From the NCBI GenBank assembly GCA_964187785.1, contig CAXLNC010001431.1:498934-560000 (forward strand): a stretch of DNA of 61,067 nucleotides. Direction: 5' to 3'. The translations under genes and the position numbers were made by a program. Within the stretch, counting starts at the first letter, position 1, and the number at the start of each line of letters is the position of its first letter. Of the stretch, positions 3,689 through 57,190 are shown piece by piece. The notes beneath the pieces were generated by a model. That model was given only the letters and a program-made list of their open reading frames with translations, ran no database searches and was not told the DNA's origin. The stretch comes from Amphiscolops sp. MND2022 (taxonomy: Eukaryota).

Positions 3689-5893
3689 TCAGAATATCCT
3701 AGTTGTGTTTCGGCAGTTTTGACAGTCACAGTATATTTGGTAGGTGCACAATTGATCTTCAAGATAGAGCTCGTGAAAGTATTGCCACATGAAGTCCAGA
3801 ATTCTATTTTTGAGCCCCAAAGGTTCGAAGAATGCCACTCTCTCCGGAAGTTTGTTCGCAAGTCGACACGTCCTGAAACAGAACTCAGCGCGAGCTTTCT
3901 CAGTACGGGCAGTTTTTATATCAAACATCATTCTGCCCTTTTTAGACATTGTCGTTGTGATATTCAAATCAACCCCCAAGAAGCGCAATTCGTGAAAATA
4001 TTTTGAGAGGAATAGTAGGTTCTTTAGTTGGAAGAACATAGGCACTGGTAGAAGATTGCATTTTAAGAGAAGCTCTTTGTGAGTCGAATGATAGTCACGA
4101 CATACCCATTTGAGGACTCGTTTCTGGAAATTTTCAAGTAATTTTAAACTGGTTCTGGAAAGGCTGAAGCAGCAACAAGCAAATGACAGAATTGGCAGTA
4201 GCATAGATTTATACAAATTTAGTCTGACTCGTATTTGCGTAGCGGAGGTGTTCCTTTTCATAAAGAAGAAAACTGTGTTGGCTTTACGAATTTTGCTTTC
4301 AATATGGGTTGACCATGACAAATTACTAGTTACCATCAATCCAAGATCTTTGGCAGATGTAAGTCCCAGGAGAGGTAAGTTACTCAAATAGAATTGTTCT
4401 TCCGTTGTGCCTCGGAATGTAACTATAAAACATTTTAGGTCCTTGACAGCAAAAGACATCCTGTTTTCCACTCCCCATTTAGTAAGGTTATCAAGGTCTA
4501 ATTGAAAAATTTCTTTGTTGTTAATCACTATGCTTTTCAGGTCGTCGGCATACAAGAAAGGTTCACTATAGATTAAATATTTCGGTAGATCGTTGATAAA
4601 TATAAGAAACATTAACGGTCCAATAACAGACCCTTGCGGTACTCCACTTGTTATAAGAAGTTGATCAGAGCGTTCATTGCCACAACGGACAATTTGGTAT
4701 CGATCTGTCAAGTAATCTTTGAGAACCTCTAGTAGACATCCACCAATCCCTATTTTAGAAACCTTTTGAATTAACTCATAGTGAGGAACTTTGTCAAAAG
4801 CTTTTGCCATGTCTGCATAAAATGCAATGATGGATTTAGTTGTTGGGTCGTCATAGCTATTGTAAATTTTCTGTAAAAAAGAAAGCAAATTTGTTTCGAC
4901 AGACTTGTTCTTGTCAAAGCCATGTTGGGGAGAAGTTATTTGGTGAGAAAAACAGTCGTAGATAGGCGAGTACAGACACTTTTCGAAGATTTTCTCGAAA
5001 ATATCAAGTATTGCTACTGGTCGGTAATTTGACACATCTTTCTTGCTAGACTTTTTATGACTAGGTGAAATAGCGCTAATTTTCCACACTTTTGGTATTC
5101 TTTTCTGCCTTTTGATATTTCTGAAGATAAGATTGAATGCTTTGCTCAGAGGTGCAGCCAAGTTTTTGATGAACAAAGGCGGAATACCATCAGGGCCTCT
5201 AGATTTGGTCTCATCTAAATCGTCGATATATTTTCGGATAGTACTAACTGATGTATCGAAATTTGTTGTTATCGGGTCTTCGCAATATATATCACTTGGT
5301 GACTTGTTTTTCGGCAAATAAACAGATTGGAAGTAATTATTGAAAAGGTTTAACGTTTCTTTGACGCTGTTAGACTCTTGTCCGTTTAGAACAAATGTTG
5401 AAGGAAGAGCGGACTCTTTACTCATTCGTTTGAAATGTTTGAACATTAAATCAGTGTTTCTTGTTTCTGCAATTTTCGTTTGATAGTCAATTCTATCTTG
5501 TTCACTCGATTTCCAAAACTCGGTTTCCAGTGTTTTAATCTTTTGTTTGCGGTACGCAGTTGGCCTCAACTTCAGTAATTTCCTCTGTGTTTCAAGTTTT
5601 TTCAACAAGTGAGAGGTCTCCGGGGTGAACCAACTTGGTAACGTTTGTCTGTGAGTCGTTCGTCGGGGAACACATTTTTCAATAATATCATTGAGATAAA
5701 CATAGAATTCGTTTACCATGTTATCTATGTTCGAGTAACAAGTCGGTTCGAAAGGAGAATTTTCCATAATCTTTAAAATTTCATCATAATCAGCAGCATT
5801 GAAACTGTACGCAGTCTTTGTAGCAGTTTGTTGTGTATAGATGGGCAGTTCAATTTCTAGGGCAACAGGAGTATGGTTTGATATTTTGTACAA
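3689..5893 (-). pseudogene. LINE ORF2, reverse transcriptase portion
   Basis: KSRGPDGIP, NYRPVAIL, DMAKAFDKVPH, GVPQGSVIGPLMFLIFINDL, YADD, KDLG. Begins with the endonuclease C-terminal motif as SNH (normally SDH). Separated from the endonuclease ORF by frameshifts. Confidence 0.92.
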
Positions 5894-5982: not shown

Positions 5983-6522
5983 TTACTGCTTGCTGTAGAC
6001 AGTGTTTGTCAAAAAGATCCAGGACCTCTCAAAATCATCTTCACTATGAAAAGTATTCCAATTTGTTTGGGGGAAGTTTATATCTCCACAAAAAAGTTTT
6101 TGGTTTTTCTGGAATCTCGTTGACAATGTTAGCATCAATTCGAAATCACTCACTGTGTATCGGTACACGCTTTCTTTAGGCGGACTGTAAAATGCACAGA
6201 TAATCAGCTTGTCGTTGTTGATAGTAACTTCGACTGCCACACAACACTGGGGTAAGTTGTGCTCAATTTTTGCGGAAGAAAGACTTTTGGATACAGCAAT
6301 AAGTGATCCACCATGAGTAGATGTGTTCTCTTCTCTAGAGGGACTATCAGCTCGATAAAGCTCATAAGTTTCAAGAAAAAGTTCTTTATCAGAGATATTT
6401 GAAAGAAGCCAGGTTTCACTAACACATGCAGCTAGAAAACCGCCTCCAATTACAGCAGTAGAAAATTTTCTTCGCCTATCTTCATTTATCAAGCTATTTG
6501 CATTTAGGACTAATATGTTCAT
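5983..6522 (-). pseudogene. LINE ORF2, apurinic-like endonuclease portion
   Basis: NANSL, SETWL, GGSLIAV, YSPP, GDINFP motifs. Frameshifts before joining the RT frame. Confidence 0.9.
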
Positions 6523-6531
6523 TGAACATAG

Positions 6532-7379
6532 TCACTTGGCGGTAGGAGTAATTTCAATTCTGATATCATCTTGGAAGAGTTCAAAATTTCTTATTTTGAG
6601 CGCACTCCTGGCGACTCCAGTTTCAATTGATTCTCGTCTCTTTTTCAAGCATGCATTTTCTTCGAACGCTTCCTCTCTCGTTAACGCTGGCAATATGTAG
6701 ATATTTTTGTTCATCAGTTCTGTTCGTTTTTCGATACTTTTGGCAAAAATTGTTCGTTTTTCCCATTCATTCGATACTTCAACCATTATTGTTCTGGGCT
6801 TTGATCTAGAATTGTCAAATTTTCCGAGTCTTTTCACATTAACTATTGGACTGGTGACTCCTAGTGTATTGAAAACATCTTTCAGTTTTTCATTTGTCAG
6901 TAGGATATTCTCTTTGGCTGGTTTATCAAAATCCTCAGGGATACCCTGAATTCGCAGACTTTTGTTGGTGTCGTGATCAACCTTTTTGGGGTTATGGTTT
7001 GGTATCTCAGCTTTTGGACCAGATGGTACTTTGCTCTCAATAACCTTTGTAAGAGATTTTTCAGACGAGTTCAATTTCATTTCCATCATCAGAGACATTT
7101 TTTCTCAATTTTTTCAAATTTCGCTTCAAGATCGGGAAATTGATACTTATCTTGAAGGTTTTGGGTGTTAATGGCCTCCAGGACTCGGTCACGCCTGTGG
7201 GTAGTCACACACTCGTCACAGAAAAGAACAACACTCACACCGAGCTCCTTGATTCCGTTAATAGCCACCGATGAAAGACCAGTACACACTTCAGTAAGGT
7301 GCATCTCCAGGCTGCATCCCACACAGTGAAAGCTGCCACCCTTGCCGATGCCCTTCTTGCAGGTTTTGCAATTGACCAT
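6532..7379 (-). pseudogene. LINE ORF1 (PHD finger, coiled coil, RRM-like part), split by a frameshift near 7090
   Basis: CKTC...FHCVGCSLEMHLTEVC...FCDEC is PHD-like. SLRIQGIPE...VKRLGKF...KPRTIMV...IYILPALTREE is typical of CR1-group ORF1. Confidence 0.8.
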
Positions 7380-9275: not shown

Positions 9276-9740
9276 AACAAGACGGGATTGTGTAAAATCG
9301 GCACTATCTAAGGCTCGAAAAGCGTAGTTTTTTTAAATATGCGTGGGACGTTTTCATGAAAAACTTCTGTTTTCGAACCTCCGCCTCCTCCTTACAAAAA
9401 CGCAGTATAGTTCGGATATAACGTCAAAAGTTCGGATATTATTATAATATAGCGCTCAACTGTGGATATAACAAGAGGGGACCTTCTAAGACAAAAAAAG
9501 TCTCAACGCCGAAACAAAAATTGAAAGGAGGGACACTTCAGTCTCGACCGGTTTTGTATGTTACGTTTATTGAGTAAAAATTGAAAGGAGGACCCTTTGC
9601 AATAACTTGGATGTGTTTCCCAGATATTCGTTTAGTTGAACAAACAACAAAAATTTCGTCGCTTCGAGACTCATAAAAAAGAAAAAAACTAGTAACTCTA
9701 ATAGTCGGGCTCTTCTATTATTGAAAGCGCCGACTAAAAA
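9276..9740 (-). mobile_element. HINE/DINE-like non-autonomous rolling-circle element
   Basis: 5' subterminal repeat AGCGCCGACT-AAAAA at 9726-9740 with inner partial inverted copy; 3'-end-like AACAAGACGGGA at 9276. Confidence 0.65.
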
Positions 9741-9910: not shown

Positions 9911-10167
9911 ATGTCAGCACAATGGATACATTTTTCTCTCAGTTCATGTTCGACCCACCGTGAAGGGTACACGTTATACCATGTAACCGGATACAGACAG
10001 CAAATTGCATGCAACAGTCTGAAAAACATCAGCCCTGTGCAAAAGTTCACTTCGATGACTAGGTATCGCAAAATGTTGGAACTGCGAGAAGCGATTCTTT
10101 TGGAATGTGGTGAAGAATCCTTTATTACCGATCTCCCTGGTTTGAGGAAACCCACTGCTCTACGAAG
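9911..10167 (+). CDS. RPS6KC1: RPS6KC1-like exon 1 (PX domain, N-terminal part)
   Basis: MSAQWIHFSLSSCSTHREGYTLYHVTG...TRYRKMLELREAIL...LPGLRKPTALR. Ends AG|GT, phase 2. Confidence 0.8.
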
Positions 10168-13100
10168 GTTCTCGGCTCTTTTCTGTTTTTTTAACCCACC
10201 ACCCAAGATTTTTTTTGAAAAAAAAATGTGAAAAGATTAAAATAAAAAGAACTGAACTAAACTGGAAACCTTCACTTTTATATTTTTCCTCAGGATGACA
10301 GTTTAGAATTCAGATGCAAACTTGTTCACGCTATTTTGTCTTTGAAGTCACTCATTTTTGTTCAAGAAATCAGCGGCTTCCTGTTTTGAGTCACAAAAAG
10401 CAGTTAAAACAAATTTAATATTAGTCAAAATGCGTGGAAAATGTTTTGTTCGATTAATAAACTATTCTAATAGAAGTTTACTTACTGTTATTTTCACGCA
10501 TTTTGAATATAATTATGTTCGTACTAACTGTTTTTTCGTGACTTAAAACGTGAAGTCGTTGAATTTCTCGTGAATGCGCAAAGAAAAATAGTGTAAACAA
10601 AGTTTGTATCTCAATTCTAAATTGTCACCCTGGAAATAAACATAAAACAGAAGGTTTCCGGACTGTAATCAAGTCTTTTTGTTATATTATTTTCACTAAT
10701 TTTCAAAAAAAAATTGTGGTGGGGGGAAAACAGAAAAGAGGCAGGTTCTCCAGCAACGAAGTGACTCACCGACAACAGAGCATCGAATGTTTCTTCAGTT
10801 TCCTGGAAATCATAAATTCGCCCGTTTTGACCTCCGTTCTTGATGATTTCTTCAACATTGACACGCACAATCAACCTAGTATCGAAAATAGCATGGAACA
10901 TAATGGAAGCTTTCCTGTACATGAGAACCCAATGGAATCCAGTTCTACTGGGGTTTTCGCAACAACTGGAGTGTCTGATGCAAACTTTAATGATTTAATG
11001 GATGATTCCTCTAAAGTACAAATTGAGGCTGTTTCGCACAGAGCTATACATTCCAATCTACTTTCTCCTGATTGCTTCAGAGCATCCTGCGACTCGCTTT
11101 CATTGTCATCTAGGTATGGCGTCTGTTGTAGTCATTTGCAAAGCGACATTCAAAATTGCCAAACCAATTAGATTAAAAATCAAGTTTTCTAAATAGACAT
11201 TCAAAATTCCCAAATCGACATTCAATTTTAGTAATCTCCCAGCAGCAATTCGAAGCAGCTTTTTCATTCTTTCTACCTCTCTAGTGGCATGATTGTAGCA
11301 TATGCTAATTTTGAAGGTCTATTCTGTTAAATTTAATTGTCCTATTTTTTGGAAGTAACGAATTGGAATCAAGATTGATAAAACAGACTGATTTTCGAAA
11401 ACAAATTTGAATGTGGTATTGCAAATTTTCAACGTCCTACACTGTATATATTTCTATAGATTGTTTTCAGGGTCAAACAAGCCGGGAACGGCATAAGTCG
11501 GCGCCATTAGGCTCAAAAAATAGCACAAGGACTTCAAAGTGTCAAAGTATTCTCTTCTACAGTACCCGAAAAAGTTGGCCCGAAACTATTTTAGTCGTCT
11601 TTCACTTCATGAAGCGCCGACTAAAATGGATGGTTTAGCCCAGAAAAAATTGTCTTGTTTTAATCAGCGCTTTATTGAAAATTTTCTATATTTGCTATAA
11701 AACTTGAATATAATGACCGTGTGCGTCAAAACCATGGACAATTCCCAATGCGTCGAACTTTCAAACAGGCGAAAGTCAAAAATCGATTTATAAACAATAC
11801 AAATTTTGTTCAGCGTGCAGTCTGATTGATTGAAATTTAAAATCAAATCAATTTCAACCAATTGAAAGGCTGGGCATTCAAAAAAGAAAACACTGTATTC
11901 CTTCATATAAAATATCTAAAATGTAAATAAATATATGGAGGGCAGTGTAAAACCGTATTACTAAAAAAATTAAAAATTTCAACCAGTGTATATTATACTG
12001 GCTGATATAGCACTAATTTGTAATTGCTCAAATTCTGGTCGTCGAGAAGGATTTGTAATTAGGGCTGTATGAAAAGTCACCGAAACCACGTGTCGGTAGC
12101 TTGCAAGTTTTATATGCCCGTATTAGAGAAGGCGAGTCGGTTAACATTTTTTGGTGTCGTTGCGCTGCAAGTTACAGGGCCTCCTTTGCAGTATCAGCGT
12201 TAATGCTCCCAGAAAATAGCTACACAGCGGAGAAAATTACTAGGTGAATCAAAATCAAGGAATACATTTCGAGATGTCTAAGTTTCAATTGTTTGTCGAT
12301 AAAGGTTTAACGACAGCTTTGATTGAACGCTGCTGTCAATTATTATTATTTCTGCGATAGCAGGAATAATATTGAAATCTGGTTTATTGGAATTTTTTCA
12401 GTTCAAATTTTGTCTGAATTAGTTTTGTTTGATTCCGAGGACCTACTGAAAAATTCAGATACTTTGTTCGGCAGCGAGGATAAGCGTGAGATTTAAATTT
12501 CTCAAGTTGCCGACAATTCGTTTGTCGTGCGATGGAACGAGCGAGTGGTAATTATGCTTTCATACGCCGAGTTATTGAGATAAAGCGAACGAGTGTTAAA
12601 TATTCGTTCGCCGAGAGCTTCGCCTGCATTCAAATGCGAAAGCGAAACTCCGTGTACGCTTAGTAGTTACATTTTCTTCAGTCCGAGAAGAAATCAAGGC
12701 GGTGTCTTCTTTTCAACATGAAAGCCTAAAAGCAGAAATACTGTGCCCCACGGGGCCTTTTTTTTAAATAGGCAACTTCTTTTGAAGCGATAATATTTTC
12801 ACCCATCAAAATGAGAACGAAATGACTGGTAGCGGTGTCCATATTTTTCTGATTGTTCGAATATTCCTTAGTTGAAGATGTGATTACTTAACAAAAATAC
12901 AATTCTAAATAATTGACAGAAAATTTCAGTCAGTTTTATGTACAAATCATACGACTTCAAAGGCGCAAATTTTAATGTGCTCCGTTTTTTTTGGTTCACT
13001 TTGTAGTCGCTGATTTTTGAGAGCTGAAAATAACATATAATCCTAATTTTTGCACAATTTTGTTAAATTAGAAAATAGCCTCAGAATATGAATCAGTTTT

Positions 13101-16100
13101 TATTGGACCTTTTTGGTTTCAGATCCGACCATTTTTACGAAAGCTATGATGAAGACGAACTTTTTGACCATTTTCGGTCGTTTCTGTGTTTGAGGTGAAA
13201 TTGCTCGAAACTGGTTTCAACTGTTACCATTCCAATGCCAGGTTTCTGTAGCTCAGGTTTCCGTCCATCAAGTTTCCATATGAAGTTGTTGCTGAAAATC
13301 AACTCTGTAAGAAATGCTCAAACATTTGCCTGCTGTAGCCAATCTTAATACGTGGGGCGAGAGAACACGTTCCATTTTTGTCGAATTTCTCTTAGGTTGT
13401 TGATTTTCATCTAACATGTCATGTGGAAACTTAATAGAAGAGAACCAAAACTACAGAAACCTGGCATTGGAATGGTAGTCGCTGAAACCAGTTCAGTCCC
13501 GAGAAGTTTCACCCCAACCACAAAAATGACCGAAAATGGTCAAAAATTTGGTCTTAATTACTTTTGTAAAAATGATCGGATCTAAAAGCAAGAAGTTCCT
13601 GTCCTATAAAGACTGCTTCGAACTCTAAGGCGACGACTTCAGTTTTACAAAATCGGTGCCTAGTGAAATAGCATCGACGGTCACTTTGGTTGCCTAGAGT
13701 GCAGTTCTGAGATTTTTCTACATGTTTTCAACTCGAACAACTTTGACTTGTATAACAGTTCAACAACTACCATCATTCAGTTTTGGAATTGCAAACAAGT
13801 GAACCTCTGTCATTGTTTGAGTAGTTTGAGTAAACTCTTATTTCAAATTCAATGTCATGGTATATTTGTAGATCAGATCGACAGATTTTATCGCTCGGTA
13901 GAATGTGTTCACATCATTCCGAAGCATTCGTTTGCCGCCCGTTTGATTTTCCGTGTGCTTATCATTGTCAATAGTCAGGGTTGGCTGTTTTGAAACATTG
14001 TTTAAAAACATGCGGTATAAAAAACGTTTTAAAACATTACAACCTCTTGAAAGTGACTGTTTTTAGTCGGCGCTTTTCTTTAGAAAAGAGCGACAATAGT
14101 CATGGCTTTTCGTCAGTTTTTCGATACAAAATCATTTGAAGCCAAGGGGTCCCTTTGGATTTTTTTCGGTGTTGTGAGACCTTATTCTTTTTGCACATGA
14201 CGAAGTCAATGTGCATTGCAGTCCAGCTAAGAAAGTTTTTTTTTTCCACAGTAGCCAACTTCATAATAAGCCCCTTTTAGAGAAAAGCCAAAACCCCAGA
14301 GAGATTCGAACCTGCAGCCTCCCGATTGCGCGGCATAAGTGTTAACCACTGTGCCATAAGGACGTTATTGAATAAAGTTGAACTGTTGAATATATATACG
14401 CATGCGAATAAAATAATATATATACGCATATTAAAATAATCGTTGTCTTCGTCATGTGTTGCGAAGCACCGCTTCGCCTCTGTGTTCAACTTAACCGAAC
14501 AGCTCTTTTAATCTCAGTACTTTATCATACTTTGAGGGCCCGTTTCAGTGAACTACATCAGAAAACTAAAGAAAAACAATAGAAAACAAAAACGTGTGTT
14601 TTTTATGAAAATCTGTTTGTTTGATTAATATGATAAAAACTGTTTTTGCCAACCCTGTCAATAGTTGATGTTTCAGTTCTTCCGTGGCTGATTTATCGTC
14701 TGAAACGGCCTCTTCCGCAAGCACCGGTTTCGAATCGCTGTCCTGCTGTGACGAGAACAGTTTTCTGTTTGGAAACACAGTCCTTGCTCGCGATTGGCTG
14801 CAAGCTGCTTTGATCGAAGTCACCTTCATTTCACCCTCTTCAAGTTAGCCCCTAAATTGCATTTTAAAGGTTTTTAAGGTTTCAAGTAGAGGTGCTGCAC
14901 CGGACAAGAAAATTTCCGTCTGGCCGGACAACATAACTGAGCCGCCGGATACCTGCCGGACCGGACATTATCCTCGACTATAAGCTATAAAAGACTCTTT
15001 TCAGAATTGGGCAATGAATATGACGGAAAGCAAAGTAAACGCTTGCTCCAAAAAGTGAGAAAAATTATTCCGTTTTTTATTCAACATCGAAATACCTGAA
15101 ACTTATGACTGTCGTCGAGAAATGAATGTTGAAACATGGCTATAAAAGCATCAGTCTCGATTTTAATCTAAGATACGCGATCATTTGCTCAGATATTCGT
15201 CCAGCCGGATTCCGTCAAAAGTTCACCTCTAGCTTCAAGATTTTTTAAGTTGTTTGAAGGATTTTACACTGAGTTTTGACACCGCTAATCAACGATTTAG
15301 CGAATTAGCGGCCGCACAGAAATTTTTAAGCGAATTTATTTGCAATTCAAATTAGCGGCGGCCACTAATAAGTTGTCCAAATTCAAAATTTTCTCGGAAA
15401 ATACGCGGAGTGTCGAAATGAATTTCGAAAAATGCCAACTCTTGTAAAACTCACACAGTATGAGAAATTTTTTTCAAAAATTGAATCAAGTTATCGTTGG
15501 ATTTTGAAAATAATTGAATTCAAACATTTAAAAGGTTGAAGTGAACGTTTTTCAGCGAAATGGCAACTTTGAAGATAGCGGTTTGAACTGATTTTAATGA
15601 AATTTCCGCATTTTATGAATATATTCACTCGTCAGTGGAAAGATGAATACCTTCAGATTAATTTTACTGGAGCTGAACCTTGGGATTTTATTTTATTTCA
15701 GAGAAATACCTGATTGAAAATAGGGAAAACCTTTTCGACAAATTTGAAAAACCTGTGACTCAATTGTCCTACTCAATGCCTTCCGAATAAAGGACAAAAA
15801 ACATTTGATGTGTAGAACCAAAAATTGCCATTTTTCTTCGTTTTGAGTTCCTGACCGGAAAACTGCCATTGCAGCTTTTCACTCATCTCAAGAGTAAGTT
15901 TCACAAATTTGTCCTCTGTCGTTTTCTACTTTATTTCTTCGCTTTTGGCATGATTCTAAAGTTAACAATTTCAATAGACTTTTATTCGAGCTGATGTATT
16001 GAGATATTAAATCTCTTTCGTAGTTATGCGTTCTGAACGATCATTTTCCCCAGTATTTCATTTCCTTTCGAATTAATCTTGATCGAAGATCGTGATGTGT

Positions 16101-19100
16101 ATATTGAATCAGTTTTACGCAATTAATTTTGATTGAATTATCTGTTGAAGTACAGTACGATTAAGAAAACATCTCCCGGGCGATTTTAGGCTCGATTTTC
16201 TCGTAATCAATTGACAATTTACAATGCAAGAGTCAACACTGTGACTTATTACCGCCAAAATATAGACCAAAAAATTTACATTTTCCACTAGAGAATCCAA
16301 AGCTCACTTTTCGGACGCGCGAAGTGGCCCGTAACAAAGAAATCGCCGAAAAAAGTAGTTTGATTGAAGAAACAAAAACAAATGAAGACAGAAGATTTAA
16401 CGACAATTGACGGTCTACTAAGTGAATTAAAAAACGGAATACAGAAATATTTCCCTCTTCAAAATCGTAATATTTGTAAACAAGGCACTAAAAATCTTTC
16501 ACTTTCTCTGTCAATCATCTCATTACGTAATCAAATCTTCAACAATGAATGATTCGAACCTTCAGAAAACGTCTACTAAGTGAACCGAATAGAACAGAAC
16601 GCACAGAAGTATTTCACTCTTCAAAAACGTACAAATTGTCAGCAAGACACTGAAAAATTTCCACTTTCTCTGTCAATCATCTCATACGTGTAAGGACTAC
16701 TGTCCCTGGGTACTCTTAGGTCACCATTAGACCGTGAGTCCTTTTTTGTAATTTTATTTCTAAACCCATTGTTCACTTCAGCGTTCTCCTGACTATTAGG
16801 GGACGAACTAACCTCAGTGTCTCGATTCCCTGAGGATGAATTCGAACTCACTATATTTTGGATCTCTGGAATTACTCTCTCGGCTATTGCCGTGTTAATT
16901 GCCCTGTTTATCTGACTAGGCATTAATGACATCATTGAATCCATTTCTTGCGAAAGTCTCATGTTGAATTCGCTAGTGAAGGTTTCCAGTGTCTCTTGAA
17001 CCCTATCTTGCCTATGAACTGCATTTCCATGGACGTAATGTCCAAATTCGTTTTCATGAGATTCATACCGTGCAGATTGGGGATTGGACTCAATGTCTTG
17101 ATTGTTTTCCACATTCCCAATCATGTTTGAAAGTTCGCGTTCAATAGGATTAGTGTTCTCATTCCATATCATTACGTCCATATTTTGAAAGTCAGACATC
17201 ATGTCCATTTCCCTTGACTTCCTAGCTTTCGCCTTTTGCTTTCCTGTGGAAGGCAAAAGAGACAATTGCAAGAGGTAAGAATTGATTATCTTTAGGCTTG
17301 CAAAACAAAATCAATTGATAGGCAGCAGAGAATATAAAGTTGTGTCCCCCGGTCCAGAAGTCCCGGGTATATATAGGACAGCTTGCATGACTATCAGGAA
17401 AATAACCGTTATTTTCTAAAAATAAATAATCACTCGTGTAAAAATAGCATTACCTATTTATAGGTTACATGGCGTAATGACCTACTGGTCACATCAAAGG
17501 CGTCACACCGCCACTCCCATCTATTTCAACTAGCGTCCTCGAAGGACAACTGCACTTTCATGATCATGGTAGCAACCCTGCATGTATCATTCATATAATC
17601 ATTACATGTTTTGAGCATTCCTGTGTGTATTTCAGGCACGAGAGTTTGGACTTGGCCTAATACGGCTTTTGAGCCAAACGGGGGGGGTGATCAATTGTAG
17701 CACCCTTATTTGTAAGAATATAATTGTATGCATCATTATTCTTCAAGTTAAGTCTATTACTACAACAATGAAAGCACCAGTTAATTTGGACTCAGTGTCC
17801 CATTGCCTTAACAAGTACATCAATATTTGAAAGTATGCGGCGCGTGGCCATAATGTCCACTAATAAGAGCACTGTATTACATAGGTTCGAGAAAGAAAAT
17901 CGCCAGATTTAAGGTTTATAGAGACCACAGTTGCAGCGTTCCCGCAAGTAACAGTAGGCAAATGCCCTGCTTTATCGATGGAGGTAGAGAATTTAGAATA
18001 AAGGATCTCGTTTTTCAGAATGCTCTTTATTTGACTTAGTCCGTGATCAGACAAGTGTATCTGATCCTTCCGGAGAAGATTGATATTAATCTTATGCGCG
18101 ATCCCGCGAAATATCCACTTGCGGGACTTTGCTTTATCGCTAAGAATACGATTAACAGCAGCAGTTCGCTCGGGTTGAGGGAATCGGGGAGTAAGCCCAA
18201 TGATAACCACTTTGTCTGCTAATGCCACCAAACGGTCTGCAACGTCAATCGGCGATGATTCGTTGTTTCCGTTTTTGTCGAACAAGCAATTGGCACCAAT
18301 GAATAAAACCACTACCTTGAATTGACCTGTGGTGGGCAGAAAACCAATGACGTTCCAAGTTTCCCCCAGGTATCGTAAGAATATTGAAATTCGGGAAGGA
18401 AAGCTGCGAAGTCTGAAAGTTAGCGATTAGTAGGTTGGCTGCTGTGGACGGCTTTAATGTGTGAAATCACATTCGATTACGTTGAATAAAATTGTTGTGT
18501 AGAAAACAGGCTTTTAGGATGAAGCTTTTATTCAACGTAGTCTGAAAATGGAAATACAATTAGTTAGAGTTAGTCATGGTCAATAAGTTAGTAATAGACA
18601 GACAATGGCCATAGTCATTATATAACACATAGCTAGGCTTTTGCATTGACCAAACGTCAACGTCAAGGGCTATCGATCAAACTATCAATAATGTTGCCGT
18701 AGACGAATAAATGTTTCCTTTGTCGTGACATAGTTCTAATAAAGTATAAATCACAAATATTGAAAGTGTAATGTTCGAAAGTGACCCTGGTATGGTTTCA
18801 TTTTTATTGATGAATGGATCCATGTTGAAACTAAAATAGTCGGACTATTACAGTCACTTTCCCGTCAAGACTCACACGCGTGTAAATAAAATAGATAAGG
18901 CAGCCCATGTGGGATTTGGAGGTTGGCCTAGTGGTTACAGCGCTGACTTCCCAAGCCGCGAGAGTGGGTTCGATTCCCGCAACCATCTAATTTGTTTCAC
19001 CAATCCAGTGATGTACGAAATCAAAGGGTCCTCCTTCGTTTATTAAATGGATTTCAATGCGTTTTTTCTCCAATGTGGTTGTCGTCAAAGTGCGTTTTTT

Positions 19101-22100
19101 TAAATCATTCCCAAAAAGTTTCACCAATTAGGGCTTTCTTGAAGTTTTCCATTGTGTATTTTTCCGCCCTCTGAGATTTTGACAATTTTTCCATGGACAA
19201 TCTGGACCATAATAACAGACTTTGCGTTTTTTCAGTCCTGAGCGGGTGACAACTTAAGGGTTCTTGTCTTGTTTACTTCTCAAACTGATGAAATAGTATT
19301 GACTTTATTAGCTCGTTCCTATTCCTTCAATGTAAGGTTGTTAATAGTAGTTTTTTCACGGAAAATGTTTTAAACAGGTTCTTAAACAAAATATACTGTT
19401 TTTTGTTGTATTTTATTGTTTTTTCTCTCTTGGGGAAAACTATCGTGGAAAACAATGTGTTATGCACAACGGTTTTCCATTTGTTGCCAAATATTTCATT
19501 GTACAAAAATATAACAAGGATATATATAACGGGGATATATAAAAGAATATAAACCATGAAAGTCATTCACTTCACTGAATTTTTCCAGATATCTTTCACA
19601 CGAGACTTTTCTGATCTGAAAAACCTTAAAAGTACCAATCAAATTGAACAGTCACTCAGAAACTAGATCATAAACAACTAACTGTAAAGAAGTGTCTGAA
19701 AAAAAAACAGGAAAAGCAGTGTCTTTTTAAAATTGTTTCATGTTTTTTCTTGTGTTTTAATAAAACATGAATGTTGACAAGCAATAAGATTAAAAGCAAA
19801 TAGAAATCAATCTCTCGATGACCGCAAAAATTCGAGAATGTTCTAGAAAATATTTGAATATTCGAATACGAAAAAGGCCTTGCTACGAAATATTGTTTAC
19901 TAATATTTGTTATTTGTTGCTTAATTTATGTTCATTTAGCCGTCTGAAATGTACCATTCTAATCTTTTGCTGTTTATATTTTTGCCTCGAATCTTGATGA
20001 AATTCTGTACGAATTTGGCCTTCAAAACTGGGAATCTAATACATTGTTCCTCTCCATCAACTTTTACAAAACGATCTATAGAAACGGCGACAAATTCTAT
20101 AGTTATTTCAATGAATAAAACAACTTAACCACCTTGCTTCAAAGCGTTTGTTTTGCAGAGCCCTCCGAGGATTCTTCGAACAAGAGGGGTACTTCGAACA
20201 AGTACGCAGGCATGTCGGGTCTGTTGGGGAAGTTCTCCTCATCATCATCATCATCGCATTCCAAGAACTCTTATCTGGAACAAGCCGCCCATTACGTCAA
20301 ACTTGCCAACGAGTATGAAAACTGTGCCCAATACGAAGGTCAACACGCCGCAGCCAATGCTCAATAGAAACACGTGATATGTATATATGCTGGCTGTCTA
20401 ACCGCACTTCAGCCCCCCGCACTTTTTGCGGGCTGCGGGCTAATTAAAAATTTTTGGCATAAAAATGGGATCTCTTTCACTATGTCCCCCCAAAATCCCG
20501 ACTCAGCCAATCAGAAGCGTTGTTAAATAAGAGCAGATCTGCGTTATTAGAATGTGCAATACATGTATTTAATAGTGTTTCACTTTGTCCCCTCTTTTTG
20601 TTGTAGGGGGGGGGGGGTGAGATAGTGACATAGATTCGAGAATTTAAGTTGCATCTGAAACTCTTTCATAATTCGTTTCATAATTTTTGACTGAGTGGAA
20701 ACTTGGAAAATCAAGATGACTTTTCGAAACAACCTTTAATACTGTTTGATAATGGATTGGACTTTTACATGTTGGGCTTGAAATACAAATTAAACTATCG
20801 AAAGTTTTTCCTTCAAAGGGAAATCACACAGTTGGCTTTTTAAAGAATAATTGTTCATCTCAGTAGATTTCAAGTGAAACAAGACGCCCGCTAAGCACCG
20901 GGATATTTTCCGCGACACGCTTATTGCAAAAAAAGTATGGCGAAGGAGAGGATCGAACCCACCACCTACTGGCTGGGAAACACGAAAAAATTTCAAGCAC
21001 AAGCCCGGGTTCGAACCCACGACCCACTGGCTGGGAAAGCAATAAGTGAAGTGCACTTCACTCCATGGAGTGGGTATAAAGTGAAGTTTTGGCAGAATTT
21101 GTTAAAAAAACGCGTCACAGATCATGATTTTCCTCCCCCATTTATTTTGGCGGAAAATAACAAAAAGTAAACTTGTCGAGTAAAATTCTGGTTAAATAGT
21201 CAGTTTAAAAGATCAGTCAAATGTAATATTGCCTTGTACCATTTTTTCCCCAAAAATGTATAGCATATTGAGAATGATAGCAGGAACGACGGAGAAAAGA
21301 GAAATATTTGTGAATAATATTTCGAGATAGTAAATGTACTTTTGAATAATATGCAACAAAGTTCAATTTTTTCCATTTTCCGAAATACCAAATATTTGAC
21401 GGCATCGGCAGTCGAACCCGTGATCCCATGATCGGACGGCTACCGCACATCCTCTCATCCAAATTGCCGTATCATCGAGGGGTCCGAATTTAATCTTATT
21501 CTTATTTGCTTCGCAAGAATTCTATTGAGCATTGTCCCGCCCGCGCAGGTGCTTTCCACTCCTACAAAAGCTGCATCGAGATTCTGTTGCGAGGCGTGGC
21601 CAACGAAACAGATGGTGAGAAACGGGCAGCTGTGAGCGAACAAGTGACTGAGTACATCACAATCGCTTCTCAGATCCTCCTGAACTTCATCCAAACCGAT
21701 GCCGACCCCAGTCTGTGGTTGCAGGAATCCATCAGCAAGAGCTTCTCGGAGCTTGCCATGCCCTGCGAAGAACTCAAGTTTTTCACTATCCTCAGGGTGC
21801 GGCCGGCGGGCTTGAATTGAAATTCATTAAATATTGGACACCTAAGCTTCTAATAGATGCACCGCGCGCATCGAAACTAGGGATGTACCGGAATACGTTT
21901 TTGAGTTCCGGCCGGAGCCGGACCGGAACTTTGATTGTGCTATCCTACATTTACGTAACATATTTTTTGCTTTGTATCGATTGCTTTATATGCGATTTCT
22001 CAGAATTCGGAAACATATATGAAGAAAAAAGAAGCAGACCTCTTCCAGAAACTGGCGAAAAACTTTTATTTCTTCACCATAATCTGAAATTGTTTTAGTC

Positions 22101-25100
22101 AATTGTATCAAATTATGAAACAATTTAGAACAATTTGGAAACAATGCTGTTTTTAAGATAATTTTGTTCCGGCCGGAACCGGAACGTTTTTGAAATCCGG
22201 CCGGACCGGAATTCCGGTACATCCCTAATCGAAACCAAAAAGGGCGATGATTTTCAAATATGCAGCCCGTATTAAGGGGGCTGGTTAGCAAATAGACGTG
22301 TATGGTGTCGATACGCTGCAAGCTGCAGAGCCTTCTTTCAGTGTCAATAAGGTTCCCAAAAAATTAACATCGAAATCTTAGCAAGTGAAAAAATTAATTG
22401 TCATTTTTAGAACAGTTATATTGTAATGAATACCTTTCCAAGAAAAAAATCCTGGTTCCGTCTCTTTCAGTTTGGGCTTCATGGTATCTTCGTGGATGCA
22501 GTACGCAAGGTGCCTATAAGCGCGAAACGTGAACCTCTACAGGAAATAAATTAGGCTGTAAATTTTCATTTAAACTTTTCAAGATCTTATCGATGACATT
22601 CGTTTTGTTCTCAGTTTCAAAAAATATTCAGTAGTATGTATATACTTTTGTCGAAATCTTTCGTTGTTTTCAATTCTAAAAAGGACGATTCCTCATTTGC
22701 AATAGCGTATAGTCTACTTGAAAATAAAGGCCTCGAAGATAATAAACCTGGAACGTCATAAGTGGACGCCCGCTTAAGGTTCAAAGAGAGGAAAACTACT
22801 TCAAATCTTTGTTGAGAAAACTCAATTTAATAGTCTTGAAAAACCTAAAAAGGGAGCCTCTGGACCTAAAAATTCTTTTTATCTCACCAGAAAAAGTAAC
22901 AGCGCTTTTTCCAGTTTTATCACCAGAAATATCAAAAAGCCATAGCGAGAACCCTTTTGCGAAATGAAAATCAACCCCCCCCCCCAAAAAAAGGACGAAC
23001 AGTGTTAAAACAAAACATAAAAGCGGCCCTTCAGGCTTCAAAAACGCTTCTTCCTATCTAAAAGAATTAAATCGACCTTTGGTTTGTAATTTGCATGAAA
23101 TTCATTTTCGTATAACTTTTTTGGTCAGTTCGTGTGGATTAAAAAACCACAAGTCACTATAAAGGTCGCGTTTTATTTTCAGAAAAAAAGCGCCGACTAA
23201 AAACAAGACATTCTCTCTGAAACGTGGGCTAGACCATCCATTTTCCTGCTTTTTTGTCTCTGTCCTTACAGCATAGGCAGTACATTCAAGAACAGATAGT
23301 CTTGAAAATGTGTTAAACATTAAGATATTTTTCCACGATTAAAGTGTTGACATTCTATCAATTTCTAAGCCCGCTCAAGGTTCTCTCGCAAAATATGGTA
23401 GTCCGAGACAAAGACGGGGAAATCTACTTTCTCAAAGTTATCCGCAAACCTTTAGAGGGCTCTTACAACTTCAGGAATGTTCCCTTGTCAGTGAAACACA
23501 TGGCGAGGATTGTGAAATTCTACGACCTACCTAGCTGCTATGTTTTCTGCATTGAGTATTTGGGACAGAATATTGGTTTCGATTATCAAAATAATTGGAA
23601 GAATTCTCTTCAAACGACGCCAGACTTAACCCGAATCTTCAACACTTTCGAAAACAACGATAGCAGCAAATTCCATGACGATGAAACGCTGGGTTCTGAT
23701 TTGAATGGTTTTGTGGAATGCCCTGAAAAAGAACAACTGCCAGTGGTACGAGATCGATTTTTCGTTCAAAATGCGGCCGTGAACAAAGATTCAACTGAAA
23801 TGGAATCTGTTTTGAGCGATTTGGAAGAAAGTCTTTCGAATTCTTTCGGACAAACATTAACCGATGAAAGAATGAAAGAAACCCTGAGGCGTAAAATCAA
23901 GGAGGCCAAATTGGAATTTTCTCGTAACTCCGATTCTTCTCAGAACATTACTCATTTCCGGCCCATATCCGGTGGAGTCGCTAATCTTGATTGCTTTGAT
24001 GCGACCCCGGTTGTTGAAACTTCGAAAAACCTTTCAAACGATTCTCTCAAAACTTCTGGTACATTCAGTGATGATCAACATTATGACCTAAACAAACTAT
24101 TTTAGTTGCAGTGAAACCGAATTAAGTTGATTAAATTATTCTACAAGTTTTGATTTTTTTTCTGATATTTTGCCTTTTTTCAGAACGTTTTTTACTCACG
24201 TTTGAAGTAATTTTATGATTAAGAAAATTTTCGAATCAAAATGAATATTTCAACAATTTTTCCATCAATTGTTGGACCTATACAGTTAATGTCATTGAGT
24301 CATTTGGCGGTGTTTTTAATCATGTGTTAACTCTAAATGGACGATGAAATTTTTGACTCCATCCAAAAATCTGGTGCTTAAACTTTCAACCGCAATATCT
24401 TCTAAACTTTTCGAGTCCGACAAACGATTTATAGCGCGTTGGAAGGCAATCAGGGCTTTCAAATGGATTTTTGATCTACTGGACTAAACACTAGCACCGG
24501 ACTTTGCGCCAAAGCATTGCACACCTCGTTTCTCTGGCTGCTTTCCAGCATGTTTCAAAACATGCTGCGACCCAACCTCGATACCAGTGGGATAAAGTGG
24601 CCACAAACAGAAACTGAAAAAAAAACGAAAATATGCAGTTTTTTTTCAATTTTTGGTCCCGTTCTCTCGATTTCTGAGACATCAAGTCAATATTTCGTAA
24701 AAAGGCGTGCAATGCTGTAATATCTGCTACGTCTGAAAATCTTACTCAAGTGTTTTCTTTACCATAAGGTCAGCTGGTGCCTTCAGAAGTTTGTAGAAAC
24801 CAATAGGTACGAAATCGTGCCATCGTCCATTCAGGGTTAAAGATACAAAATGAAGAAAATACCCGATAAAGTATAAGCGATATAGTTGCAACCCCCAAAA
24901 AATCCTTATGAAATTCTTTCATTCAAAGTTTAAGATTATCACTGCTTGCTTTTCAAGATTCCTCCTGCATTCCGCGGATTCAAGATCTTCAGAGGATTAT
25001 TCTTCAGATGATCGACTGCTTCCAAGAACTGCATGATCTCAATCTTTTCTGGGGAACTTTCACCCCCAGTAACTTGACCTTCGAACGTCGTGACGTCATC

Positions 25101-25457
25101 AAAATGACTCATTGTTTCAACTGGCTTAGTCCGGACTATTATTCCAAGGATCTCTGGGATTACGAAGTTTTACCATTCGTGGCTCCAGAAATTTCGGAAA
25201 ACTTCATCTTTCAAATTCCTGACTCGAAGAGCGATGTTTTTAGTTTGGGTGCTGTTATTTACACGTTATTAACTAACCGGTTGGTCATAAACGACTTTCC
25301 CGGTCATCTCATTGACGAAATGAATGCCTACAGTTTAGGATACAAGTCTGCTGGAAGCTTAGCCGATTTGTTGAAAAAGATGCTAGCGTTTGATCCCAAA
25401 AATCGGTTGACGCTCAAAGGAACTAAGGCACATCCGTTTTTTCACGAAACTTTGTGA
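9911..25457 (+). CDS. RPS6KC1: RPS6KC1-like protein (PX - MIT - split pseudokinase). Exons 9911-10167, 10745-11113, 14677-14843, 20159-20338, 21549-21796, 23380-24058, 24958-25457; 2400 nt, 799 aa
   Basis: All six introns are GT-AG and phases agree (2,2,1,1,0,1). PX (HREGYTLYHVT...RY...LP...RF...RQQSIECFFSF...LDDFF), MIT (YLEQAAHYV...YEGAFHSYKSCIEILLRGVANE) and kinase halves (LKVIRK; FVAPEI; DVFSLGAVIYTLLT) match the RPS6KC1 architecture. Exon 3 is the least certain. Confidence 0.82.
10174..10742. mobile_element. Foldback/long-TIR non-autonomous DNA transposon forming RPS6KC1-like intron 1
   Basis: Imperfect inverted arms of about 265 bp starting GGCTCTTTT / ending AAAAGAGGC, spacer about 50 bp. 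Perfect 8-bp direct repeat AGGTTCTC at 10166-10173 and 10743-10750. Confidence 0.88.
10745..11113 (+). CDS. RPS6KC1: RPS6KC1-like exon 2 (PX C-terminal part and linker)
   Basis: CAG|G TTC: RFSSNEVTHRQQSIECFFSFLEIINSPVLTSVLDDFF continues the PX domain. Donor AG|GTATGG. Confidence 0.8.
11476..11626 (-). mobile_element. Minimal HINE/DINE-like element (about 150 bp)
   Basis: AACAAGCCGGGAACGGCATAAGTCGGCGCC at the left end and AAGCGCCGACTAAAA at the right end. Confidence 0.7.
13000..13750. mobile_element. Second foldback-type palindromic element (ends approximate)
   Basis: Long imperfect inverted arms, including a perfect 27-bp pair TACCATTCCAATGCCAGGTTTCTGTAG (about 13226) / CTACAGAAACCTGGCATTGGAATGGTA (about 13451), and GACCATTTTCGGTC / GACCGAAAATGGTC. 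Confidence 0.7.
14188..14486 (+). repeat. About 300-bp cassette (reverse tRNA-like segment plus Helitron-like 3' hairpin), copy 1
   Basis: Almost identical to 26536-26833; ends GCGAAGC-ACC-GCTTCGC-CTCTGTGTT. Confidence 0.85.
14677..14843 (+). CDS. RPS6KC1: RPS6KC1-like exon 3 (Ser-rich linker)
   Basis: Acceptor TTTCAG, donor A|GTTAGC, open frame SSVADLSSETASSASTGFESLSCC..., phases fit both neighbours. No domain motif. Confidence 0.6.
14887..15231. mobile_element. hAT-type MITE
   Basis: TIR TAGAGGTG / CACCTCTA, CCGGA subterminal motifs, 8-bp duplication GTTTCAAG / GCTTCAAG. Confidence 0.8.
16413..16688. repeat. Two diverged direct copies of an about 120-bp unit (158-bp spacing)
   Basis: GTCTACTAAGTGAA...CACTTTCTCTGTCAATCATCTCAT at 16413 and 16571. 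Confidence 0.7.
16689..17469 (+). mobile_element. LTR (TGT...ACA) of a gypsy-like retrotransposon, followed by a PBS-like TGGCG; contains an antisense ORF
   Basis: Starts TGTAAGG, ends GGTTACA, immediately followed by TGGCGTAATG (17470). The minus-strand ORF 16639-17271 lies inside and runs off the LTR edge. No clean target duplication. Confidence 0.6.
17860..18520 (-). pseudogene. Decayed SGNH/GDSL-like hydrolase ORF, probably TE-borne
   Basis: LLIANFQ (block I-like), ILTIPGG (block II, frameshift follows), VVLFIGANCL (block III), KDQIHLSDHG (block V DxxH). Confidence 0.65.
18918..18988 (+). pseudogene. tRNA-like sequence (Gly-CCC-like pseudogene or SINE head)
   Basis: A-box TGGCCTAGTGG, loop TTCCCAA, T-arm GTGGG-TTCGATT-CCCGC; acceptor and anticodon stems mispaired. 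Confidence 0.55.
20159..20338 (+). CDS. RPS6KC1: RPS6KC1-like exon 4 (start of MIT domain)
   Basis: Acceptor TTTTGCAG; ...SKNSYLEQAAHYVKLANEYENCAQYE; donor G|GTCAAC. Confidence 0.82.
20469..20640. mobile_element. Diverged MITE of the 25850-26131 family
   Basis: GATCTCTTTCACTATGTCC left end and shared ACTCAGCCAATCAG...GTTTCACTTTG core. Confidence 0.6.
20935..21045 (-). repeat. Two tandem tRNA 3'-half-like units
   Basis: TTTCCCAGCCAGT(G/A)GGT(C/G)GTGGGTTCGA occurs twice on the minus strand (anticodon-loop-like plus B-box). Confidence 0.6.
21549..21796 (+). CDS. RPS6KC1: RPS6KC1-like exon 5 (MIT domain to kinase start)
   Basis: GAFHSYKSCIEILLRGVANETDGEKRAAV...PCEELKFFTILR; donor GTGCGG, phase 0. 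Confidence 0.85.
21878..22227. mobile_element. hAT-type MITE, young
   Basis: Perfect 17-bp TIR TAGGGATGTACCGGAAT / ATTCCGGTACATCCCTA, perfect 8-bp duplication ATCGAAAC, CCGGA subterminal repeats. Confidence 0.92.
22743..23203 (-). mobile_element. HINE/DINE-like element, diverged
   Basis: AGCGCCGACTAAAAA at 23189-23203; degenerate 3' end (GGAACGTC...TAAGGTTCAAA) at about 22743-22790. Confidence 0.55.
23380..24058 (+). CDS. RPS6KC1: RPS6KC1-like exon 6 (kinase N-lobe and acidic insert)
   Basis: VLSQNMVVRDKDGEIYFLKVIRKP...MARIVKFYD...CIEYLG followed by a long acidic low-complexity insert. Donor G|GTACAT inferred from phase. Confidence 0.8.
24958..25457 (+). CDS. RPS6KC1: RPS6KC1-like exon 7 (kinase C-lobe and stop)
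   Basis: QRIILQMIDCFQELHDLNLFWGTFTPSNL...FVAPEI...DVFSLGAVIYTLLT...LLKKMLAFDPKNRL...AHPFF. Confidence 0.88.
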
Positions 25458-51972: not shown

Positions 51973-52740
51973 GCGTTCGTGGTCTAGTGGTAAGATGCTT
52001 GCTTTTCAACCAAGAGGATTCGTGTTCGAACCCCTGCCTATGCGCTAATTTTTTAAAGAAGTATTTCGAGGCAGAAGGTTCTCACTTTTTCCGGCATTAT
52101 GAGATTTTCTGCCTTTCGACTTTGTGAGACTTTCGAAAATTTTTTATCTCTTCAATTTGTTTGATATTTTACAAGAGAACAAATGTTAAAAAACCCCAAA
52201 ATGGCACTATGAGACTAAAAATTTTTTTCGAAAATTTTCTGAGAACCCAAAGGGTGTCCCCCTTCAATTTTTTGAAATTTTGTAACAGAATGGATGTTTA
52301 AAAAATCTCAATGGGTCCCCCTTTCACGGTTTTCGGCATTGTGAGGTTTTTGAAAAGGAATATTTTTCGTCTTAAATTAGGTTTTCTCAGGCCCAGCAAC
52401 GCTATATCCGATTTTTGTTTTTTTAAAGACCGGTGTTTTTTCTATGCGACTTTTATCAAAATTTTTTACAAGAAACGACACGTTTTGCGAGCGTAGAGGA
52501 CCCGTAAGGTTTTCGGCACTATGCGACTTACCGGAGACCTTCATCGAAAATTTTTTTTAATTCAATTTTCTGTTTTTTAAAATGTCCTAGACTTATGCGT
52601 ATTCCTTCGGGTTTTTTTTGGCGCTGTAAAATTGAAATTTCAACAATGTCCTTTTACCCTGGGTTCTCCGTATGATATTGCTTATTTGGTTTCCTTCAGA
52701 AGTTCGCAAGTGTTTGCGAAGCACGGCTCGCCTCTGTGTT
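51973..52740 (+). mobile_element. Composite element: tRNA-Glu-like head, HINE-type internal repeats, Helitron-like hairpin end
   Basis: TGGTCTAGTGG...TTTTCAA...GTTCGAACCC at 51973-52045; TTTTCGGCATTGTGAG / GGGTCCCC repeats; ends GCGAAGCACGGCTCGCCTCTGTGTT. Confidence 0.6.
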
Positions 52741-56803: not shown

Positions 56804-57190
56804 GGCTCTTTTCTGTTTTTCCAAAAATTTTTGAAGTATATTTTCTTAAACATTTCAGACTAGTCTAATTAAAAGTAATTTTTTCCATAACATCAAGTAA
56901 ACTTCTATAGAATAGTTTATTGTTTGAAGAAAATATTTTTCACGCATTTTGACTATAATTATGTTCGAATTAAGTGTTTTTTGTGACTCAAAACAGGAAG
57001 CTGTTGATTTTTCTATCGAGAATGCGTGACTTAATTGGTAAAATAGAGTGAACAAAATTTGCATCTCATTTCTAAACGGTCCCCTGGAAATAAATTCAAA
57101 ATTGAAGGTTTCTGGACTGTGTGTTTTTTTTGTTATAATATTTTCACTAATTTTTCACAAAAAATGGTGGTGAGGGGAACAGAAAAGAGC
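56804..57190. mobile_element. Second, internally deleted copy of the intron-1 foldback transposon family
   Basis: Same termini (GGCTCTTTTTCTG / CAGAAAAGAGC), arm homology to 10490-10742, spacer in opposite orientation, own 8-bp duplication CTTTTTGA at 56796-56803 and 57191-57198. Confidence 0.85.

Follow-up and report, generated by a model that had tools for sequence, protein, structure and literature searches.

Introns probably gained from inverted-repeat transposons in a PX-MIT-kinase-like gene of Amphiscolops sp.

Background

How does a single gene come to hold several introns whose two ends can pair with each other, and is such pairing kept for the sake of splicing or left over from the DNA that made the introns? 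The question is raised by a PX-MIT-kinase-like gene in a stretch of 61,067 nucleotides (nt) from Amphiscolops sp. MND2022 (assembly GCA_964187785.1, contig CAXLNC010001431.1, positions 498,934 to 560,000 of the forward strand), the whole of which is called the window below. The original prediction described paired ends in introns 1, 4, 5 and 6 of this gene and proposed that elements with terminal inverted repeats (TIRs) had repeatedly given rise to introns, the TIR ends being retained afterwards for splicing. Here we report that intron 1 is a transposon belonging to a repeat family, and that introns 1 and 5 each lie between the copies of an 8-bp target site duplication (TSD) whose empty site is found in a relative. 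We consider it likely that these two introns at least, and probably intron 4, are gains of the introner type in which both splice sites come from the TSD. Recent intron gain is rare in animals, and here four lineage-specific introns lie in one gene.

Results and discussion

Gene model and relatives

Seven exons on the + strand of the window, spanning 9911-25457 (9911-10167, 10745-11113, 14677-14843, 20159-20338, 21549-21796, 23380-24058 and 24958-25457), rebuild a spliced open reading frame (ORF) with an uninterrupted run of 799 codons, or 800 including the single terminal stop. All six introns have GT-AG borders, and non-canonical borders of the euglenid type were found in none of them. The donors of introns 1 to 6 read, in order, GTTCTC, GTATGG, GTTAGC, GTCAAC, GTGCGG and GTACAT, in agreement with the original prediction. 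Pfam matches place an MIT domain in exon 5 and a protein kinase C-lobe (Pkinase) in exon 7; the N-terminal part is not called by Pfam and looks PX-domain-like by eye. The layout of PX, MIT and kinase is presumably that of the RPS6KC1-like PX-MIT-kinase proteins.

An exhaustive profile search with exon 7 gave very few relatives, and follow-up led to three full loci, L001, L002 and L003, in other ENA assemblies; a region search with P0152 for further outgroups returned nothing new. A tree of the kinase C-lobe joins the window gene to L003 and L001 to L002, with the more distant P0003 outside. L003 is an ortholog with 64% identity over aa 259-799, 53% over aa 1-199 and 86% over exon 3. The counterparts of exons 1 and 2 form one continuous stretch in L003, as do those of exons 4 to 7, and its only introns are at positions 2 and 3, with borders (CCAG/GTAAAA and TCAG/GTGTGT; a slash marks the splice site) that correspond to those of the window gene. 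L001 and L002 are missing introns 1, 3, 4, 5 and 6, and their single large gap is in the linker near intron 2.

Introns 1, 4, 5 and 6 are absent from all three relatives, on two branches of the tree. The four introns that had been flagged as stem-bearing are exactly those missing in L003, and the two without a terminal stem are those it has in common with the window gene: the old intron 2 (11114-14676, + strand, 3563 nt, GTATGG..CAG), at the same position in L003, and intron 3 (14844-20158, + strand, 5315 nt, GTTAGC..CAG), which measures 264 nt there. The spliced product aligns with L003 without gaps over junctions 1, 4 and 5, so the predicted borders at these three junctions appear to be fixed.

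Introns 1 and 5 as inserted elements

Intron 1 (10168-10744, + strand, 577 nt, GTTCTC..CAG, phase 2) is flanked on both sides by AGGTTCTC, with 8 of 8 positions matching. Direct reading places the two copies, each AG/GTTCTC, at 10166-10173 and 10743-10750 (+ strand), an exact 8-bp repeat abutting the TIRs of a foldback non-autonomous element at 10174-10742 (+ strand; termini GGCTCTTTTCTG.../...CAGAAAAGAGGC). The intron consists of 6 nt of the first TSD copy (GTTCTC), the foldback element and the AG of the second copy, and all 577 nt fold as one hairpin (-229 kcal/mol, z -21 against shuffles). It has no polypyrimidine tract, its 3' end being GGGGGGAAAACAGAAAAGAGGCAG. A second, internally deleted copy of the same family lies at 56804-57191 (unstranded), with 76-78% identity to intron 1 and perfect 15-bp termini; a direct repeat of some 7-8 bp borders it on both sides (CTTTTTGA / TTTTTGA, the edge being ambiguous by 1 nt), and its ends carry no AG/GT. 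In L003 the corresponding exon reads ...GCGT AGGTTCTC CGG..., with a single copy of the 8-bp repeat.

Intron 5 (21797-23379, + strand, 1583 nt, GTGCGG..AAG, phase 0) is likewise lineage-specific, and its junctions, CTCAGGGT and CTCAAGGT, agree at 7 of 8 positions. The 3' TSD copy (CTCAAG/GT, 23374-23381, + strand) is identical to the uninterrupted exon of L003, where the empty site TTCTCAAGGTTTTG holds CTCAAGGT once; the CTCAAG of this copy is now intronic. The exonic 5' copy (CTCAGG/GT, 21791-21798, + strand) is one change away from the ancestral CTCAAGGT and now reads CTCAGGGT, a Lys-to-Arg replacement, so intron 5 retains the ancestral codon. The TIRs are about 16 bp long. The right one (23358-23374, + strand, TCAATTTCTAAGCCCGC, ending ...AAGCCCGC) directly adjoins the 3' TSD copy. 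Between the left one (21806-21820, + strand, GCGGGCTTGAATTGA) and the TSD stand 7 nt that repeat the TIR terminus in tandem; in the other haplotype this stretch reads GCGGGCG/GCGGGCT (here the slash marks the boundary between copies).

At the TSD positions that splicing leaves unconstrained, 5 of 5 match at intron 1 and 4 of 4 at intron 5, with chance expectations of about 1e-3 and 4e-3. Taken together, an element, an 8-bp target duplication and the empty site of a relative make introns 1 and 5 a textbook proof of insertion, one of them with a fossil of the ancestral codon inside the intron. The 8-bp TSDs at both introns are a hAT-type feature. No transposase was seen, and the fit of the two elements' termini (GGCTC... 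and GCGGGC...) to YARNG-type TIRs, which we take to be the usual hAT terminus, is poor. An element nested inside intron 5, a miniature inverted-repeat transposable element (MITE) at 21878-22227 (unstranded), is closer to the hAT type than the elements of introns 1 and 5: it begins TAGGG... and has perfect 17-bp TIRs (TAGGGATGTACCGGAAT), an 8-bp TSD (ATCGAAAC) and a depth of about 50-100x single copy.

Haplotypes and selection on the spliced frame

A second haplotype in the assembly (L005, 97-99% identical) carries introns 4 to 6; its contig breaks off within a tandem repeat of 7.66 kb that lies in intron 3, short of exons 1 and 2, and does not cover intron 1. Between the haplotypes, exons 4 to 7 show 16 synonymous and 7 nonsynonymous substitutions along with a single in-frame indel of 12 nt. 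All 7 nonsynonymous changes fall in the variable kinase insert and none in the MIT or kinase domains, and the frame is intact in both haplotypes. The spliced frame is under purifying selection, and the introns must therefore be removed accurately; we infer from the gene sequence that they are indeed spliced. The two independent TSDs, at introns 1 and 5, both contain AGGT, for which the chance is about 2% each, and those of the 56.8-kb family copy and of the nested MITE are unrelated to the AGGT-containing ones. The presence of AGGT in both suggests survivorship of spliceable insertions.

Several structural differences were also seen. The 12-nt in-frame insertion polymorphism is at 23615-23617, in the part of exon 6 that encodes the variable kinase insert. 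The tandem repeat of about 7.66 kb includes 14976-17449 of intron 3 and was met in L005, L007 and L008 (ctg183068, ERZ25074608), a contig that begins inside the repeat. The other haplotype is also without about 350 bp at 19760-20110. These differences in intron 3 reflect either a structural variant or an assembly break.

Pairing of the intron ends

For every intron, RNAduplex was used to score pairing between its two terminal stretches of 50 nt. The scores were set against two nulls, one made by shuffling these ends and the other from 3000 random pairs of 50-nt segments drawn from the 61-kb window at matched spacing. The ends of intron 1 pair at -43.2 kcal/mol (z -6.8 against shuffles, p<0.0004 against genomic pairs), those of intron 4 at -30.4 kcal/mol (z -4.4, p=0.0013) and those of intron 5 at -25.5 kcal/mol (z -2.4, p=0.014). 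Intron 6 gave -17.7 kcal/mol, with p=0.02 against its own shuffles and p=0.17 against genomic pairs. This is no better than the stem-less intron 3 (-17.4 kcal/mol, p=0.18 against the genomic pairs); intron 2 likewise showed no stem against them (p=0.41), and the introns of L003 have no terminal stems either. The stems of introns 1, 4 and 5 are real and that of intron 6 is marginal, so the claim of paired ends in four introns stands for three of them, beyond chance, and does not extend to the fourth.

Every stem that could be compared is kept with identical sequence in both haplotypes. As a search for covariation this comparison has no power, since about 80 stem nt at 2-3% divergence would give only about 2 differences.

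Introns 4 and 6

Intron 4 (20339-21548, + strand, 1210 nt, GTCAAC..CAG, phase 1) is lineage-specific, and the uninterrupted exon of L003 reads TACGAAGGTGCTTT. Near its ends lies a perfect 15-bp inverted repeat with arms at 20355-20369 (CAATGCTCAATAGAA) and 21520-21534 (TTCTATTGAGCATTG; both + strand), kept in both haplotypes. Its junctions read CGAAGGT and CGCAGGT (6/7), which, with the 8/8 and 7/8 at introns 1 and 5, reproduces by direct reading the junction repeats given in the original prediction. A putative decayed 8-bp TSD, CGAAGGTG, each copy of which would have changed once, is compatible with intron 4 and is not significant. We regard an origin by TIR insertion, as for introns 1 and 5, as probable for this intron on the basis of its sequence. 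Loss of 15 nt of exon combined with an insertion was ruled out as an origin, the MIT domain being gapless against L003, and a tblastx extension into the 3' end of the intron was judged to be chance. At position 21546 the acceptor is CAG in the window and TAG in the other haplotype and in contigs of all four sequencing runs with this DNA (X1 to X4).

Intron 6 (24059-24957, + strand, 899 nt as modelled, GTACAT..AAG) is lineage-specific, with borders that conservation does not fix. It sits in a linker without alignment to the relatives, where the empty site is not alignable, and 13 alternative in-frame pairs of GT-AG borders make the distance from stem to splice site uncertain. Its stem, between 24066-24076 and 24934-24944, does not exceed the genomic null. 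Its ends have no other copies in the window or the fetched loci and are at single-copy DNA depth.

The interiors of introns 4 to 6 had been described as scrambled by later insertions, which is borne out by nested MITEs in introns 5 and 6 and by high-copy DNA depth inside all three, with termini at single copy. The MITE in intron 6 is flanked by TTAA and lies at 24331-24836 (unstranded); depth bins spanning it (24263-24805) reach about 100-500x single copy. Intronic segments with k-mer depth hundreds to thousands of times single copy are at 20462-20642, 20824-21185, 22996-23176 and 24263-24805. Two tRNA-like boxes at 20950-21038 (GGTTCGAACCC...) suggest a very abundant tRNA-derived short interspersed nuclear element (SINE). 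Comparison of the intron ends with the adjacent exon, as a tandem exon-duplication origin would have it, revealed no likeness beyond the TSD.

Mechanism and alternative explanations

Under the mechanism that we favour, a non-autonomous TIR DNA transposon would insert into a coding exon at an 8-bp target that happens to hold AG/GT. Duplication of the target would leave one AG/GT on each side of the element, and the upstream copy would supply the donor GT and the downstream copy the acceptor AG. Splicing would then take out the element and exactly one copy of the target and give back the original reading frame, and the stems would be the terminal inverted repeats of the elements. The donors would be poor because their GT comes from the duplicated target and is followed by arbitrary bases, of the exon at intron 1 (TTCTC) or of the element at intron 5 (GCGG). 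As a whole, the picture that most probably applies is that of a functional gene in which introns 1, 4, 5 and 6 were gained after the split from the species carrying L003, and in which introns 2 and 3 were there before it. The originally proposed repeated gain of introns from TIR elements is upheld for introns 1 and 5 by TSDs and empty sites, and for intron 1 by family membership as well; intron 4 is new and has its 15-bp repeat, and intron 6 is new and shows no transposon signature at its ends.

Several observations weigh against this explanation. The exact duplication at intron 4 is AGGT only (6/8 overall), its repeat arms are subterminal, lying 16 and 14 nt inside the inserted DNA, and its ends have no further copies in the window or the fetched loci and are at single-copy DNA depth. 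Intron 5 likewise has ends at single-copy DNA depth, with no second copy in the window or the fetched loci, and the ends of intron 6 carry neither a TSD nor a TIR signature. A single cDNA-mediated event may lose adjacent introns, and counts of events alone do not favour gain for introns 4 and 6. Finally, sequencing runs X1 to X4 are genomic, with a flat depth of 30-70x and contigs that cross exon-intron borders, and splicing is a prediction.

Some of these points can be read as evidence for other origins. Introns 4 and 6 may have been gained in another way, for example by double-strand break repair that captured a MITE-containing fragment at AGGT microhomology, which we regard as possible but the less probable course. 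The outermost stretches of intron 4, beyond its 15-bp repeat, form no inverted repeat and do not belong to the relative's exon, the exact 4-bp duplication would suit such a repair, and so would the lack of TSD and TIR at intron 6. Set against this are the two clear TSD-type insertions in the same gene, the decayed 8-bp TSD that would fit intron 4, and the fact that no direct signature of repair-mediated capture was found. That all four introns are ancestral and were lost in the relatives, for instance by cDNA recombination removing neighbours together, we hold to be very improbable. Introns 4 to 6 are adjacent and near the 3' end, so one loss per lineage could remove all three, and the counts of gains and losses are then similar; but loss leaves unexplained why the start of intron 1 repeats the first 6 nt of the next exon, why the end of intron 5 repeats the CTCA-AG of the relative's exon, and why TIR termini abut these repeats. 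Membership of intron 1 in a repeat family and the three relatives on two branches without any of the four introns tell against it too. Least credible of all is that the insertions are unspliced and the gene or allele is dead. Any TSD containing AGGT would automatically yield a GT..AG pair that restores the frame; the 16 synonymous to 7 nonsynonymous differences, with none of the latter in the MIT and kinase domains, the in-frame nature of the sole indel, the intact 799-codon frame and the two independent AGGT-containing TSDs, which point to survivorship through splicing, all argue that the gene is alive.

A separate matter is whether the stems, whatever their origin, are kept by selection because they bring together the splice sites of long introns with weak signals, as part of a structure-assisted splicing code across the lineage. 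We think this unlikely and rather disfavour it, and the present case alone does not establish a new splicing code. It is true that the stems of introns 1, 4 and 5 exceed chance and come within 5-16 nt of the splice sites, that intron 1 is without a polypyrimidine tract, that the repeat of intron 4 is perfect at 15 of 15 positions though two of the few free positions in its putative 8-bp TSD differ, and that every stem compared is kept in both haplotypes. For Amoebophrya (PMC7789003) and for euglenid introns (PMC11282704), such pairing has been suggested as the means by which exon borders are joined, and stems aid splicing in yeast (PMC2536676). However, introns 2 and 3, which are old, exceed the others in length (3.6 and 5.3 kb) and have weak donors (GTATGG and GTTAGC), yet are stem-less, as are the introns of L003. 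MITE copies that do not border splice sites (the 56.8-kb copy and the nested MITEs) keep equally perfect ends, as is to be expected since transposition itself needs intact TIRs. Nested insertions enlarge the interior and leave the ends untouched; since later insertions have no means of eroding the ends, selection need not be invoked for their survival. The hairpin of intron 1 would bury a branch site wherever it lay, with only about 6 and 2 nt left unpaired at the base, a geometry that is not obviously helpful, and the haplotypes, in a comparison without power, show no stem covariation. On this evidence the idea that TIR ends are retained because pairing is needed to splice is not supported, and the stems are, we infer, neutral. 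An age series does exist, as originally proposed, but it runs the opposite way, with old introns stem-less, as neutral TIR decay predicts. A variant on which we place equally little weight is that recognition of the 5' splice site is so relaxed in this lineage that a TIR element in an AG/GT target would at once be an intron, its hairpin replacing the missing polypyrimidine tract and donor consensus. Were this true, stems would be selected while an intron is young and become dispensable only once better signals evolve.

Other features of the window

Outside the kinase-like gene, 414-2999 (+ strand) holds an intronless ORF of 861 aa with BTB, B-box, BACK and Kelch domains. It has more than 30 relatives at 43-92% identity, all in metagenome-type ENA assemblies, and its nearest named NCBI proteins are at about 26%; it looks like a large, lineage-specific family. 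An atlas search with this ORF returned clusters that were for the most part molluscan or chordate, all scoring below 0.9. Upstream of the kinase-like gene is a non-LTR (long terminal repeat) retrotransposon at 3689-5893 (- strand) with a 734-aa reverse-transcriptase ORF, and with further ORFs at 5983-6522 and 6532-7098; the atlas matches of the reverse-transcriptase ORF pointed to no one phylum consistently. Tiny MITE hairpins of one family, whose ends read AGCGCCGACTAAAA, are found at 9702-9739, 11607-11671, 14058-14091 and 23176-23205 and at about 51.2, 54.1 and 58.4 kb. An apparent 1.9-kb TIR element around exons 1 and 2 (9718/11679, with the 8-bp repeat TTATTGAA) proved to be two separate mini-MITE hairpins of this kind. 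Rfam found one match in the window, a tRNA at 51973-52044 (+ strand) whose 31.8 bits are just over threshold; it was not reported by ARAGORN and could be either a degenerate tRNA or the head of a SINE. In the same assembly as the second haplotype (ERZ25074608), positions 10980-12408 of locus L009 (ctg183075) hold an ORF with a Pfam match to a Monjiviricetes fusion glycoprotein, adjoining a TRAF/MATH gene, which is probably an endogenous viral element.

Comparison with known systems

Introners with TIRs and TSDs are known across eukaryotes, including Micromonas, Aureococcus and dinoflagellates and, among animals, copepods, Styela clava and the purple sea urchin (PMC9860276, PMC12130899, PMC11282704). 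Published surveys place them in few animal groups only (PMC9860276, PMC12130899). Introners that take both splice sites from the insertion site have been described (PMC9860276, Fig. 2E), as have splice sites derived from TSDs (PMC11282704, PMC12130899). The original prediction knew of no description for this group; the intron type is already known from other eukaryotes and a few animals (PMC9860276, PMC12130899, PMC7789003, PMC11282704). The introns of the window gene share with introners a non-autonomous TIR element in an exon, a TSD that overlaps the borders, splice sites derived from that TSD and absence of the intron in orthologs; under the TSD model the mRNA sequence and reading frame would also be unchanged, as in introners. 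They differ in that three introns stem from different elements and not from one burst family, and in that one of the three elements is seen to be a member of a repeat family, with two copies in the 61 kb and the few loci covered. The TSDs are 8 bp here, unlike the 3-4 bp of classic algal introners.

Three other systems combine introns with pairing. The introner elements of Amoebophrya (PMC7789003) have an inverted repeat of 8-20 nt linking the intron ends, direct repeats overlapping the borders and a predicted hairpin that juxtaposes the exon ends, all as here; they are mostly non-canonical introns with repeats of 3-5 nt in a lineage without U1, whereas the window gene has GT-AG borders and 8-bp repeats. 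The MITE-derived introns of Fritillaria borealis and the nonconventional introns of euglenids (summarised in PMC11282704) are similarly species-specific, with TIRs, TSD-like repeats and pairing of the ends. Their borders are AG-AC or AG-AT or none, and adapted or unknown machinery handles them, in contrast to the GT-AG borders here, for which we assume the ordinary spliceosome. Stems in yeast introns (RPS17B and others; PMC2536676, PMC12350175) resemble the present ones in that base pairing inside one long intron has been suggested to help its splicing. In yeast the stems pair intron sequence that follows the 5' splice site with sequence that precedes the branch point; they shorten the effective distance while leaving the branch site free, and have been shown by mutation and rescue (PMC2536676, PMC12350175); the pairing predicted here, unlike theirs, would bury the branch region.

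What sets the present case apart is the combination of canonical GT-AG borders, 8-bp TSDs, different elements and four gains in one gene of a poorly sampled, animal-like host, for whose proteins NCBI holds nothing closely similar. If transposons are making introns in this lineage now, it would be a useful system for learning how new introns become spliceable.

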